Shown here: positions 25,101 to 62,597 of the stretch, piece after piece
How positions within the stretch are numbered: the stretch's first letter is position 1
Layout of the letters: each line of letters opens with the position of its first letter
Assembly: GCF_001194135.2 (NCBI RefSeq)
Contig: NC_068985.1
Span: 25,652,740 to 25,716,739, forward strand
Direction of reading: 5' to 3'
Source: Octopus bimaculoides
Lineage: Eukaryota
DNA length: 64,000 bases
The notes under the pieces: generated by a model
The model's input: the letters and a program-made list of their open reading frames with translations, nothing else
Database searches by the model: none
Told to the model about the DNA's origin: nothing
Translations under genes and position numbers: made by a program

Positions 25101-28100
25101 CATAAGTGTTATGTGTTTGAAATCTGAAATTTAGTGTGATGTGAATCCATTTGAAATTTAGTGTAATATGAATCTATTTGCAATCACTCCCTAATCAGTG
25201 AAACATTTCAATACTTACATTATTATCTGCATCAGTAGCCTTCACTACAGCAATCACTTCATTTACAGACTTGTTCTCCTGAATGGTCACTGGTGCAATA
25301 TTTTGGCAAACAGGAGAGGCATTGTTGCGTATGACATTGACAGTGAGAATTTTTGATTGAGACAATGGTGCAATACCTCGATCAGTGCCAGTGAGAGTAA
25401 TCTAAAAAATAAGCAAATACCCATTGTTATAGAAAAATCTACAAACTTGACAAACAATAAGAGAGTATAAATAGCAGGGAGTCAAACCCATACCTACATG
25501 CGTGCACAGACTCACATAATCTAAGTCCCATTACCATGTAATATCCTACAATTTACAAATACTTCATACAGATTATCATCTGAGTAACACTCCCAAGATT
25601 TCTCCAACTATTTTACTTCCCTGGTAACTGGTTACTTTAGCTACAACTAGTTACATTAGCTGTATGTGGTCAGTGGTTGAACATATAAACACCTACATCA
25701 TTACATTATCTTATGACTATCAAATGCATTTTACTAAGATAGAAACCATTTTACTAGGACACTTAAAATGAAACAAAAAATGGATTATATAGAAATATTA
25801 TTTCGTATGCTCTCTCACTCATAAGAAAAAGACCTCTCATAATAATTCTTTCTACTATAGGCACAAGGCCTGAAATTTTGCAGGGTATACTAGTTGATTA
25901 TTTTGATCAAGTCTTTCACTGGTACTTAATTTATCAACCTCGAGAAAATGAAAGGCAAAGTCAATCTCAATGGAATTTGAACTCAGAATGTAAAGACAGA
26001 TGAAATACCATTAAGCATTTTGCCTGGCATGCTAACGATTCTACCAGCTCACTGTCTTAAGACCTCTCATAATAACCCTGTCTACTATAAGCGCATGGCC
26101 TGAAATTCTGGAGGAGGAAGATAGTTGATGACATCAATCCCAGTACTCTAACTGGTACTTATTTTATCAACCCTGAAAGGATGAAAGGTAAAGTCAACCT
26201 CAGCAGAATTTGAACTCTGAACATAGTGGCAGACGAAATACTGCTCAGCATTTTGCCCAGCATGCTAACGATTCTGCCAGCTCACCACCTTAATAATTAT
26301 AATAATAATAACAGTCACCAGTCCAATTTCCCCCAAAACCATTTTTCCTTTCCTTTTTGTCTTTTAGCTGGAATATACTCATGTACAAATGTGGTCAGTA
26401 CTCAAGTATATGTGACAATTTGTTATTAAACACAAATGTTTAGAATAACATTCTGTATATCTTATTTATTCTTTTTTCTTTCATTTGTTTCAGTCATTTG
26501 ACTGTGGCCATGCTGGTGCACCACCTTGAAGAATTTTAGTTGAACAAATCAACTACAGGACTTATTTTCTATGCCTCGTACTTACTCTATTAATCTGTTT
26601 TGCCAAACCACTAAGTTACAGAGACATAAACACACCATCACCAATTGTCAAGCAGTGATGGGGGGACAAATACAAACACACACACACACACATATATATA
26701 TGACAGGCCTCTTTCAGTTTCCATGTACCAAATCAACTCACAAGGCTTTAACTGCTCAAGGCTACAGTAGAAGACACTTGCCCAAGGTGCCATGCAGTGG
26801 AACTGAACCCAGAACCATGTGGTTGGGAAGCAAGCTTCTTACCACACAGCCATGCCTGAACCTTTAGTGCGGATAAATTGTAGAAAGCCACAACACTGTG
26901 GTGTTCATCTTGAGAAAGCATCTCTTGGGCTAAAAACACAGAAGTTTATCTGTAACAGACAGAAAGTGTCCAGCAGTGGCAGTGAAATTGCTAAATCTGG
27001 ATTCCTCCATCTTTGTACATCATCCATAGCAAGTATCCACTTTCAACTAACAAATGCTTAGACAAATTTTGTCTTTACTGATATAGAAAAATAGTCGTTA
27101 ACAAATCACTGGTGTCACAAATAGCCAGCAGGATGGGTAAAACTTCATTATTAGCAAAGAAAGACCCTCATATTTCATTGAGTAAATGGGAGAGGACTGG
27201 TTAATTGAACCTTCAGCTACACTTGTGGCCATCTTCAGAGTAAAGAAGTAAATAAGAATTAATATAACTGCGAGTCATCTTAATCAGTAATATGAATCTC
27301 ACTAATAATAAATTATTAGTAATAATAAATTATTACAACTCACTAATAATTTTGGTTGAAAGGGATACATAACTTGATCTCACTTCTATGAGTCATCAGT
27401 AGTCATGGGATGGCATGCATGCCTACATACATACAGACATACACACACTTATACATATGTACATTATGTCAATGTCTTATCTATTAGAGGGATTTCTTAT
27501 TTAAGGAGAGATTTTTGTGTAATAATTACAAAGGGTCATCTATTGATCTTCCTCATTTAATGGACATTTTATAAAGCATTATTCTTTGGTTACTTGTTGA
27601 AGTAGTTCTTCAATAATTTGGATTTACAGAAGTCCTCAGGCTATTTTGTTAACTTTATCAAATCTCTATAAACGTCTGATAATTGTTTACTTACTTTATA
27701 GGAAGTGTTTGAATCACTTGTGAGTGGCTTACTAATACCAACATTTCCAGTTATTGGGTTCAGGTAAAACAATTCCGTTCCTCCACTTGGAGTAATGGAA
27801 GAAATCCGAAAAACTACATCACTGTTTAATGTATTCTGCAAAAAGGAAAAAACAACAATAAACCATACAAAAATTGAAAAAAAACTAGAAGATAATAAAA
27901 AATAGATTGCAAACAAGTAAAAAAGGAAACAGAGTACCACCACAAGGTCTAGTTCCTGTTGCAGTTTGGTGGCTTGTGTGCCTCAATGACCCTGAGAGCT
28001 ATGCCAGCAGAGCACAATTTCCTGGTAGGGCTCCCATGTTGGACAGGTTCAAAGGATAGAGGCTGGATTAATATGGACCACCTCTTCCCAGAGGTAAAAA

Positions 28101-62597: not shown

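Follow-up and report, generated by a model that had tools for sequence, protein, structure and literature searches.

The 64,000-nucleotide stretch of Octopus bimaculoides DNA analyzed here (NC_068985.1, positions 25,652,740 to 25,716,739; hereafter the window) carries on its minus strand part of a giant cadherin gene. This part is very probably the middle of a molluscan orthologue of PCDH15, the Drosophila counterpart of which is Cad99C, with an array of extracellular cadherin (EC) repeats resembling EC9 between EC9 and EC10. At 35% GC the window is AT-rich, and it contains abundant microsatellites and retroelement fragments together with seven gaps of undetermined bases (N). A previous reading made from the letters themselves, referred to below as the sequence-only reading, had quoted twelve peptide motifs from the region 25219-62597 and assigned them to a lengthened relative of PCDH15 and Cad99C. 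All twelve motifs are real, each being found once by motif search, on the minus strand and in the stated order, from 59746 to 25312.

The gene model was built by scanning the minus strand from stop to stop and chaining the segments by AG/GT sites and reading phase. This independent rebuild comprises 33 exons, all with an AG acceptor and a GT donor and with consistent phases, which encode 1633 amino acids (aa) in 4899 nucleotides (nt) with no stop. The conceptual protein of the sequence-only reading had the same length. The gene does not end at 25219. Cadherin-like coding segments span the whole window, minus-strand coding extends to at least 1073, and the gene leaves the window at both ends. 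Pfam searches of the model returned cadherin repeats only (Cadherin, E values of 3e-67 and 3e-114 for the two halves). A local hidden Markov model of the EC repeat identified 16 cadherin repeats in the window, from the end of EC2 to part of EC17, and linkers containing Arg-Asn (RN linkers) were counted by regular expression. The first half of EC2 is encoded further upstream, as is EC1, and with the latter added the earlier count of at least 17 repeats is borne out. The exons, in gene order and with the positions of the twelve motifs in brackets, are as follows.

62481..62597, minus strand: exon 1 in the window, aa 1-39, C-terminal half of EC2 (AG/GT, phase 0; Cad99C alignment from residue 197)
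59645..59800, minus strand: exon 2, aa 40-91, end of EC2, DGDDRSP linker (DGDDRSPAF, 59746-59720), Cys loop opening EC3 (CVRVDGVC, 59707-59684; RFDASI, 59674-59657)
56501..56615, minus strand: exon 3, aa 92-130, EC3, with a DRDTL motif invariant in the family
54154..54272, minus strand: exon 4, aa 130-169, second half of EC3 (phase 1 to 0, AG/GT)
53163..53357, minus strand: exon 5, aa 170-234, end of EC3, calcium-poor EC3-4 linker (PQDNYKP, 53297-53277), EC4 (11-residue motif aligned with PCDH15 GYILESAPVG, 53255-53223) through ITVLDKD (53186-53166)
51644..51772, minus strand: exon 6, aa 235-277, EC4
50303..50464, minus strand: exon 7, aa 278-331, end of EC4, canonical EC4-5 linker (DKNDNPP, 50395-50375), start of EC5
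47224..47402, minus strand: exon 8, aa 332-391, EC5
45159..45294, minus strand: exon 9, aa 391-436, end of EC5, calcium-poor EC5-6 linker (ENSSVNL, 45257-45237; PCDH15 RRHSICTVYIEV..PPNNQ), start of EC6
44956..45029, minus strand: exon 10, aa 437-461, EC6, lacking DXD (phase 0 to 2; FTITAG matches the oyster orthologue)
42137..42230, minus strand: exon 11, aa 461-492, EC6
40551..40679, minus strand: exon 12, aa 493-535, canonical EC6-7 linker (DVNDNPP, 40646-40626), start of EC7
39526..39584, minus strand: exon 13, aa 536-555, EC7
38265..38496, minus strand: exon 14, aa 555-632, end of EC7, EC7-8 linker (with DLPDSIP, 38360-38340), start of EC8
35581..35787, minus strand: exon 15, aa 633-701, EC8
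30834..30950, minus strand: exon 16, aa 702-740, canonical EC8-9 linker (DINDNTP, 30950-30930), start of EC9
27695..27835, minus strand: exon 17, aa 741-787, EC9, first short exon of a two-exon phase-0 module
25219..25401, minus strand: exon 18, aa 788-848, end of EC9, first RN linker IRNNASP (RNNASP, 25329-25312), start of EC10
24461..24589, minus strand: exon 19, EC10 (EC9-like repeat)
23292..23471, minus strand: exon 20, RN linker ERNLNKP, EC10/EC11
22167..22298, minus strand: exon 21, EC11
16975..17163, minus strand: exon 22, RN linker IRNNQPP, EC11/EC12
16069..16200, minus strand: exon 23, EC12
14292..14477, minus strand: exon 24, RN linker NRNLNSP, EC12/EC13
12279..12407, minus strand: exon 25, EC13
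11115..11297, minus strand: exon 26, RN linker QRNLQTP, EC13/EC14
9370..9510, minus strand: exon 27, EC14
7038..7223, minus strand: exon 28, RN linker ERNKNNP, EC14/EC15
3755..3883, minus strand: exon 29, EC15
3098..3289, minus strand: exon 30, RN linker LRNNFAP, EC15/EC16
2359..2490, minus strand: exon 31, EC16
1877..2065, minus strand: exon 32, RN linker SRNLHSP, EC16/EC17
1073..1198, minus strand: exon 33, EC17 (partial), the gene continuing past the low end of the window

The gaps in the assembly are intronic. Within 25219-62597, the gap 60979-61925 lies between exons 62597-62481 and 59800-59645, which join in frame (ISAA/DKGTPQ), and the gap 57907-58380 between exons 59800-59645 and 56615-56501, which also join in frame (KSGI/LNGN). 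The gap 42671-42730 lies between exons 45029-44956 and 42230-42137, and the gap 33008-33107 between exons 35787-35581 and 30950-30834, which join in frame (ITVNVL/DINDNTP). The exons flanking all four of these gaps are joined in frame and align to orthologues with no segment absent; an alternative cassette exon inside a gap is possible. The other three gaps, 5257-5266, 5813-6335 and 12810-12819, are intronic as well. The loss of an exon in the 42671-42730 gap was considered and rejected. A first chain of 32 exons was about 25 residues short relative to a bivalve orthologue, and a sensitive search placed these residues at 45029-44956, in an exon with the phases needed (0 in, 2 out). When a bivalve protein was searched against the window by tblastn, part of the exons were recovered.

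The strongest evidence for the identity of the gene comes from comparison with reference full-length cadherins, which were taken from the supplementary file of a published survey (PMC10734073). Cad99C 197-1005, corresponding to EC2-EC9, aligns to octopus residues 1-810, the stretch coded within 25219-62597, in a single collinear high-scoring segment pair (HSP; 285 bits, 31% identity, E = 2e-81) that ends exactly at the first RN linker, in exon 25401-25219. Similarly, a single HSP (385 bits, E = 6e-112) joins Cad99C 13-1007 to residues 5-1054 of the orthologue P0178 from the bivalve Potamilus, starting at the signal peptide and likewise halting where EC9 ends, exactly at the first RN linker. 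When 413 cadherins were ranked by their best single alignment, family members scored 244-359 bits and Cad99C 285, while the top of the 394 others scored 215, giving Cad99C a lead of 70 bits. The octopus EC2-EC3 module alone aligns to Cad99C over its full length (65.5 bits, E = 1e-19), followed by the amphioxus and acorn-worm PCDH15s, which are also collinear, whereas other families score at most 27 bits over about 60 generic residues.

Solved structures provide further support. PCDH15 is the only PDB entry with a long collinear alignment to the N-terminal 420 aa (query 5-422 to PCDH15 180-604, E = 5e-32), and this alignment covers the DGDD/Cys-loop, GYxxE..LDKD and RRxSxCT motifs; CELSR1 and the clustered protocadherins were top-scoring in the same search solely through summed short generic matches to canonical repeats. 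In addition, positions 6-208 of a family profile of EC6-EC9 align at equal lengths to PCDH15 chain 11iy_C 588-790 and to the EC6-7 chain 6bwn_A 4-206, and the PCDH15 chains are collinear with the family across EC2-EC7. In an exhaustive search of representative proteins with a profile built from the window exons and orthologue segments, giant cadherins crowded the list through the generic EC2 half of the profile, and only matches to the whole profile were informative.

The linkers tell a similar story. A DGDD- or DSND-type EC2-3 linker followed by a Cys loop opens a long, divergent EC3 in octopus (DGDDRSPAF, then CVRVDGVC, at 59746-59684), as in PCDH15 (DGDDLGPMF..C..C) and Cad99C (DSNDLDPSFIYSGCVSLDGAC; DSNDLDPSF..C..C). 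The PCDH15 EC4 sequence GYILESAPVG...RIVALDKD is matched in octopus by a GYxxE-type motif followed by ITVLDKD, the PCDH15 segment before the EC5-6 linker, RRHSICTVYIEV, by a 12-residue segment of the RRxSxCT type, and the Cad99C EC7-8 linker by that containing DLPDSIP. Calcium-poor linkers occur at EC3-4, EC5-6 and EC9-10, with DKNDNPP, DVNDNPP and DINDNTP between them, which is the PCDH15/Cad99C pattern. In PCDH15 the EC2-3 linker is p.236DGDDL240 and the EC5-6 linker PPNNQ binds a single Ca2+ at site 3 (PMC7547225), with calcium-poor linkers at EC3-4, EC5-6 and EC9-10 (PMC7547225, PMC5120219). The vertebrate features that the sequence-only reading had cited, namely the DGDD linker, the EC4 motif and the calcium-poor linkers, thus agree with the solved-structure sequences and the literature. 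The number of repeats does not follow PCDH15 and Cad99C, which have eleven; the window alone contains 16.

The phylogeny is in agreement with the pairwise comparisons. A neighbor-joining (NJ) tree built from best-HSP segments (772 columns, 200 bootstraps) united the molluscan family with all PCDH15 and Cad99C proteins at 100% bootstrap. Within this clade the molluscs grouped with the fly protein at 88% and the deuterostome PCDH15s formed a group at 100%. CDH23, Fat, Dachsous, CDH88C (the outgroup) and giant cnidarian cadherins all fell outside. The sequence-only reading had named grouping with another family as the outcome that would overturn its proposal. Grouping with Fat, Dachsous, CDH23 or CDH88C was looked for and was not seen, and the proposed kinship with PCDH15 and Cad99C stands.

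Searches of large databases identified the orthologues below, the family scoring above 3400 bits and everything else at most 2250.

P0178: Potamilus streckersoni, 3387 aa, complete
P0296: Sinanodonta woodiana, 3648 aa, complete
P0028: Sinanodonta woodiana, 2712 aa, truncated
P0294: Solemya velum, 5391 aa, C-terminally truncated
P0295: Solemya velum, 4937 aa, C-terminally truncated
P0297 / P0029: Pacific oyster K1PY39, 2261 / 2487 aa, public name "Protocadherin Fat 4"
P0290: Pacific oyster K1R0G3, 551 aa, public name "Cadherin-89D"

The octopus model is 32-34% identical to the bivalve members, and the linker series is the same position by position in all members. The exhaustive search added two limpet proteins, Lottia LOTGIDRAFT_232792 (P0273) and Patella XP_050392067, named "protocadherin Fat 4" (P0229). 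A run of RNxxxP linkers is present in all members except the limpet proteins and a short Potamilus paralogue. In the complete bivalve proteins one signal peptide and EC1-9 are followed by some 17-20 additional repeats, then by EC10 and EC11, a membrane-adjacent domain, one transmembrane (TM) helix and a tail. The last two repeats of P0178 best match EC10 and EC11 of Cad99C, and its EC11 is also matched in starfish and acorn-worm PCDH15. The closing stretch of the complete proteins consists of a non-canonical linker, one repeat, DVNDNRP, another repeat and the membrane-adjacent domain. This ending mirrors that of Cad99C and PCDH15 (calcium-free EC9-10 linker, EC10, canonical linker, EC11, MAD12), from which the architecture of the array was deduced: the ancestral order of eleven repeats is intact, as read from the sequences, and a tandem array of EC9-like repeats lies between EC9 and EC10, the C-terminal end being that of the bivalve proteins. 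Among the compared proteins outside the family, the membrane-adjacent domain, TM helix and tail of P0178 match only Cad99C 1255-1484 (E = 3e-12). The tail motif EYETQxLxMxVPPD is common to the bivalves and Cad99C and nearly identical in the two (FLREYETQSLQMYVPPD in bivalves, MKEYETQMLAMAVPPD in Cad99C), and the proteins terminate in TTML (bivalve) or TTEL (Cad99C), ends that would fit a class-I PDZ-binding C-terminus.

The probable origin of the additional repeats can be read from their similarity to one another and to EC9. Octopus EC9-EC17 are mutually similar (pairwise scores of 100-212, 30-48% identity), compared with scores of 25-90 against EC2-EC8. While repeats 1-7 of P0178 best match EC1-7 of Cad99C respectively, the RN repeats best match Cad99C EC9 in seven of eight cases in octopus and about 11 of 13 in P0178, and mostly EC9 in amphioxus PCDH15 too. 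A PDB search with the RN region returned generic cadherin matches only. The sequence-only reading had proposed amplification of a repeat from the EC9-10 position. The position and the EC9-like identity of the repeats agree with this proposal, but the RN linker does not reproduce the calcium-free linker of vertebrates. In vertebrate PCDH15 the EC9-10 linker lacks XEX, DXD and DXNDN altogether, having HPG-E and AIN instead (PMC5120219).

Moreover, the lengthening is not specific to cephalopods, since it is shared with bivalves and EC9-12 correspond one-to-one. Indeed, octopus EC2-EC12 map one-to-one to bivalve repeats and the later repeats do not. Therefore, the start of the array predates the cephalopod-bivalve split and the distal part has turned over, with the first three or four array repeats presumably being the older ones. 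The size of the array varies, from at least 8 repeats in the window to about 17-20 in complete bivalve proteins and at least 35 in Solemya, which brings the total to 28-31 repeats in unionids and 44-48 or more in Solemya. From exon 27835-27695 onward, two phase-0 exons, one of 126-141 nt and one of 180-192 nt, code for each octopus repeat. With this exon structure, unequal crossing-over could add or remove repeats in frame. The gene is a clean case of repeat-number evolution through symmetric phase-0 exon pairs.

The RN linker itself is a previously undescribed and highly conserved RNxxxP linker with a partial set of calcium ligands, and among about 400 retrieved cadherins it is restricted to this family. 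In the alignment of octopus repeats, the Glu of XEX, the DXD of the repeat that follows and the Asn of RN remain in all repeats from EC9 onward, whereas the D(R/Y)E motif and the two Asp residues of DXNDN are gone from all of them. Arg-Asn is strictly conserved across about 100 linkers from five species, which argues for a structural role. The linker xRNxxxP would retain a ligand set like that of the PCDH15 EC5-6 linker, where a comparable loss of ligands results in a flexible joint with one Ca2+, at site 3 (PMC7547225). In the RN linker the Arg would stand in for Ca2+ at sites 1 and 2, pairing with the orphaned XEX Glu; judged from the motifs, it probably replaces calcium at these sites.

Some explanations other than a single lengthened PCDH15 gene deserve consideration. 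The RN array could have been acquired by fusion or exon shuffling with an unrelated cadherin instead of by amplification of the gene's own EC9. Identity is only 30-48% among the RN repeats and about 25-35% between them and EC9, and their individual scores to Cad99C EC9 are modest, 34-63 bits. Nevertheless, no other cadherin among the roughly 400 has RN linkers, and octopus EC9, the positional orthologue of Cad99C EC9, already ends in an RN linker and falls within the block of similar RN repeats, scoring 165 to EC15. In fly and in amphioxus alike, EC9 is the repeat that the RN repeats match best, whereas EC1-7 match their own counterparts, and a fusion therefore appears very improbable. It is likewise very improbable that two genes have been read as one, a short PCDH15-like gene with EC1-9 and its own end followed on the same strand by an RN-repeat cadherin. 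This possibility is raised by the short bivalve paralogue P0173 (1188 aa), in which EC1-9 precede a TM helix, by P0030 (2803 aa), an all-RN fragment without an N-terminus, and by the fact that the linkage of the octopus exons is known from genomic DNA alone. It conflicts with exon 25401-25219, in which the close of EC9, the first RN linker and the opening of EC10 are coded together; this exon spans the EC9/EC10 junction, and both halves therefore belong to one gene. An in-frame stop, a terminal exon or a TM segment is absent from the whole 33-exon chain. An identical order without a break is present in the independently annotated proteins of Potamilus, Sinanodonta, Solemya and oyster, and the complete members have one signal peptide and one TM helix, with the Cad99C-like EC10-11 and membrane-adjacent domain after the RN array.

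The least probable of these explanations is that the gene belongs to another family of giant cadherins (Fat/Fat4, Dachsous, CDH23, Cad88C/89D) and resembles PCDH15 only locally. It is suggested by the public names, "protocadherin Fat 4" for oyster K1PY39 and Patella XP_050392067 and "Cadherin-89D" for oyster K1R0G3, and by naive searches in which summed multi-domain scores put CELSR1, Fat and Dachsous first. These high ranks are sums of generic repeat matches, and single alignments favor Cad99C by 70 bits. In Fat4, EGF and laminin-G domains come after about 34 canonical repeats, and true Fat4 matches carry PF00008, PF02210 and PF00054. In contrast, the Pfam lists of P0178, P0296, P0294 and P0295 contain cadherin-type families only, and the complete members lack EGF and laminin-G domains. 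A grouping with Cad88C/Cad89D is not favored: the linkers of oyster CDH88C are canonical, it lacks both the DGDD/Cys-loop module and the RN linkers, and its alignments to the family are only generic. The NJ tree excludes Fat, Dachsous, CDH23 and CDH88C at 100% bootstrap, with controls that did not include Drosophila Cad89D, 86C, 87A and 74A.

Several observations nonetheless weigh against assignment to PCDH15/Cad99C. Mouse PCDH15 alone reaches 192 bits in total, no better than generic cadherins and compared with 211 for CDH88C, so that discrimination depends on Cad99C, on the EC3 and C-terminal modules and on the phylogeny. The tree, in turn, supports the clade by NJ on best-HSP segments, which falls short of a full maximum likelihood analysis. 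Against the PDB chains, EC8-9 gave no PCDH15-specific signal (4xhz being out of register), and the membrane-adjacent segment showed no sequence similarity to vertebrate MAD12 at E values up to 10. An AlphaFold2 model of the last repeat, membrane-adjacent domain and TM helix, made from a two-sequence alignment, had a mean predicted local distance difference test score of 38. PCDH15 has an N-terminal Cys, and in the orthologues a Cys pair in EC1 is invariant (C4 and C105 of mature P0178). The PCDH15 EC1-2 chains align to the orthologue EC1 profile over its last 40 positions only, including the region of the second Cys; most of EC1 showed no PCDH15-specific similarity in the PDB, where the profile mainly picked up the DxNDN motif at its end. 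The bivalve orthologues alone show EC10, EC11, the membrane-adjacent domain and the tail, the octopus EC1 and C-terminus lying beyond the window, and no cephalopod protein of the family appeared among the protein-database search results. Finally, the calcium stoichiometry and the role suggested for the Arg are read from motifs, and any biological function from analogy with PCDH15 and Cad99C. With these points taken into account, a molluscan PCDH15/Cad99C orthologue remains by far the most probable identity of the gene.

This identity bears on the reported distribution of PCDH15. A published survey scores PCDH15 as lost in Crassostrea gigas, the only mollusc it covers, in which no separate canonical PCDH15 is known (PMC10734073); the finding of such a gene, with the octopus gene branching elsewhere, was the other outcome that would have contradicted the sequence-only reading. 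Peptides specific to oyster K1PY39 and K1R0G3 are absent from the sequence set of that survey (Additional file 1), and the loss in oyster is most likely a missed, misnamed gene. Public records label family members as hypothetical, Fat 4 or Cadherin-89D. The internal EC9-like array makes the gene 2-5 times longer, and pipelines therefore name it Fat 4 or Cadherin-89D and the orthologue goes unrecognized. In the literature, no description of a long PCDH15 in lophotrochozoans was found. Contrary to the published loss, then, molluscs very probably do have a PCDH15/Cad99C orthologue.

Other forms of the gene were also observed. Two or three paralogues lie close together on one contig in bivalves: CHS0354_039203/039205/039207 in Potamilus (P0166, P0173, P0178), ACJMK2_033864/033866 in Sinanodonta (P0028, P0296) and ScPMuIL_004455/004464 in Solemya (P0294, P0295). 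The Potamilus paralogue P0173 (1188 aa) is a short form in which EC1-9 lead directly into a TM helix. In the limpet proteins P0273 and P0229 the EC1-2 region is triplicated, the RN array is absent and a second Cys-loop EC3-like domain precedes a hydrophobic C-terminus; this form is a different remodelling of the same ancestral gene. P0030 (MetaClust UPI0006955DBA, 2803 aa) consists entirely of RN-linked repeats, with 20 RN linkers, no canonical linker and no N-terminal module, and is probably an internal piece of another family member. The EC8-9 linker is DINDNTP in octopus but DINNYPP in oyster and DVNDFSP in one Solemya protein, the latter two having an aromatic fifth position like the unusual DMNDY that PCDH15 has there (PMC5120219).

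The noncoding part of the window is rich in repeats. The segment 61926-62100 (175 base pairs, bp), which adjoins the 947-N gap at 60979-61925, is 99.4% identical to 59311-59485 in the next intron, and each copy leads into a (TG)n microsatellite. The pair points to either a contig end present twice or a very recent duplication, and the assembly at the gap is therefore uncertain, with the exons unaffected. Intronic retroelement fragments occur on both strands, at 7919-8459 (plus), 56994-57538 (minus), 6353-6578, 30372-30644 (minus) and 49340-49858 (minus), and one pair of fragments is 82% identical across 550 bp. Their open reading frames have the common motif LHWYGHV.RMDE..C.KKC..VEG..GRGRP.K.W.EVV.HDL, and that at 49340-49858, of 173 aa, resembles the tail of a reverse transcriptase. 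A further repeat pair is found at 13504-13708 and 37394-37585. A microsatellite of the (AAT)n type, about 270 bp long (47449-47719), lies in the intron directly upstream of exon 47402-47224 as the gene reads, and translates in three frames to long poly-I, poly-S and poly-H.

By analogy with its relatives, which connect actin-based or ciliary protrusions in other animals (tip links in vertebrates, microvilli in flies), the protein would be a membrane cadherin with a single pass and a role in linking or spacing apical protrusions. PCDH15 forms the lower part of the vertebrate hair-cell tip link and is the Usher 1F gene, and its EC2-3 is the cis-dimer region. Cad99C is a microvillus cadherin of the fly and sets microvillus length. 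Both conserved ends of the molluscan protein, the EC1-3 region and the membrane anchor with the tail motifs, point to a protrusion-linking cadherin of the PCDH15/Cad99C type with multiplied reach, and it probably keeps both the tip and the membrane-anchor modules for such a role. At about 4.5 nm per repeat, eleven repeats measure about 50 nm, and the vertebrate tip link of PCDH15 and CDH23 about 150-180 nm; the 28-48 repeats of the complete or longest orthologues would span roughly 125-220 nm. A bolder proposal, which must be regarded as rather unlikely, is that a single elongated molluscan PCDH15 of tip-link length does the job that vertebrates divide between two cadherins, binding itself or a partner other than CDH23 and bridging stereovilli, kinocilia or microvilli in statocyst or epidermal hair cells or in sucker or retinal epithelia. 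Under this proposal one-calcium RN linkers would confer calcium-insensitive elasticity, and the gene might be a 77-repeat sucker cadherin already reported from octopus. Roles in the statocyst, lateral line or rhabdomere are speculative. The gene is nonetheless a concrete candidate for cephalopod sensory and sucker epithelia and bears on how invertebrate mechanosensory hair cells, such as those in the statocyst and lateral line of cephalopods, link their protrusions. The RNxxxP array may be viewed as a natural experiment on how a cadherin filament that bears force can be adjusted in length and stiffness.

Among known systems, the closest is Cad99C. The two are collinear over EC1-EC9 at 30-31% identity and have the same succession of linkers: canonical, DxxDxxP with Cys loop, calcium-poor, canonical, calcium-poor, canonical, DLPD(S/E)(I/V)P, canonical and a non-canonical EC9-10 linker. 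The complete bivalve orthologues also have EC10, EC11, the membrane-adjacent domain, the single TM helix, EYETQxLxMxVPPD and the TT(M/E)L end in common with it. However, Cad99C has only 11 repeats, a single EC9-10 linker (DVHHLLSSGNN) and no RNxxxP. Vertebrate PCDH15 resembles the family in the DGDD EC2-3 linker and Cys loop, in GYxxExxPxG...LDKD at EC4, in RRxSxCT before the calcium-poor EC5-6 linker and in collinearity over EC2-EC7, as well as in its calcium-poor linkers at EC3-4, EC5-6 and EC9-10 (PMC7547225, PMC5120219). It differs in having 11 repeats compared with many more, and in its bent, fully calcium-free EC9-10 linker (HPG-E, DXD replaced by AIN), whereas the RN linkers keep XEX, DXD and Asn. 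CDH23, the partner of vertebrate PCDH15, is reported to be deuterostome-specific (PMC10734073), and the molluscan binding partner may therefore differ.

Other long cadherins are comparable mainly in their length. The 77-repeat octopus cadherin, described as sucker-enriched (Wang & Ragsdale 2017, as cited in PMC6339937), is similar, as far as that citation describes it, in its exceptionally long repeat array; here, 16 repeats fill the window and the gene leaves it at both ends. The retrieved cadherins of 7000-8000 aa (e.g., Nematostella LOC116612238) lack the PCDH15-like EC3 module and the RN linkers. Fat4, Dachsous and CDH23 have many tandem cadherin repeats and a single TM helix, and are the source of the public misnames. 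Unlike the molluscan family, they have canonical DxNDN linkers throughout (at most two of the RN type) and no DGDD/Cys-loop EC3, and Fat has EGF and laminin-G domains. Overall, the long form with its unusual linker extends the PCDH15/Cad99C family and is not a new class of system.

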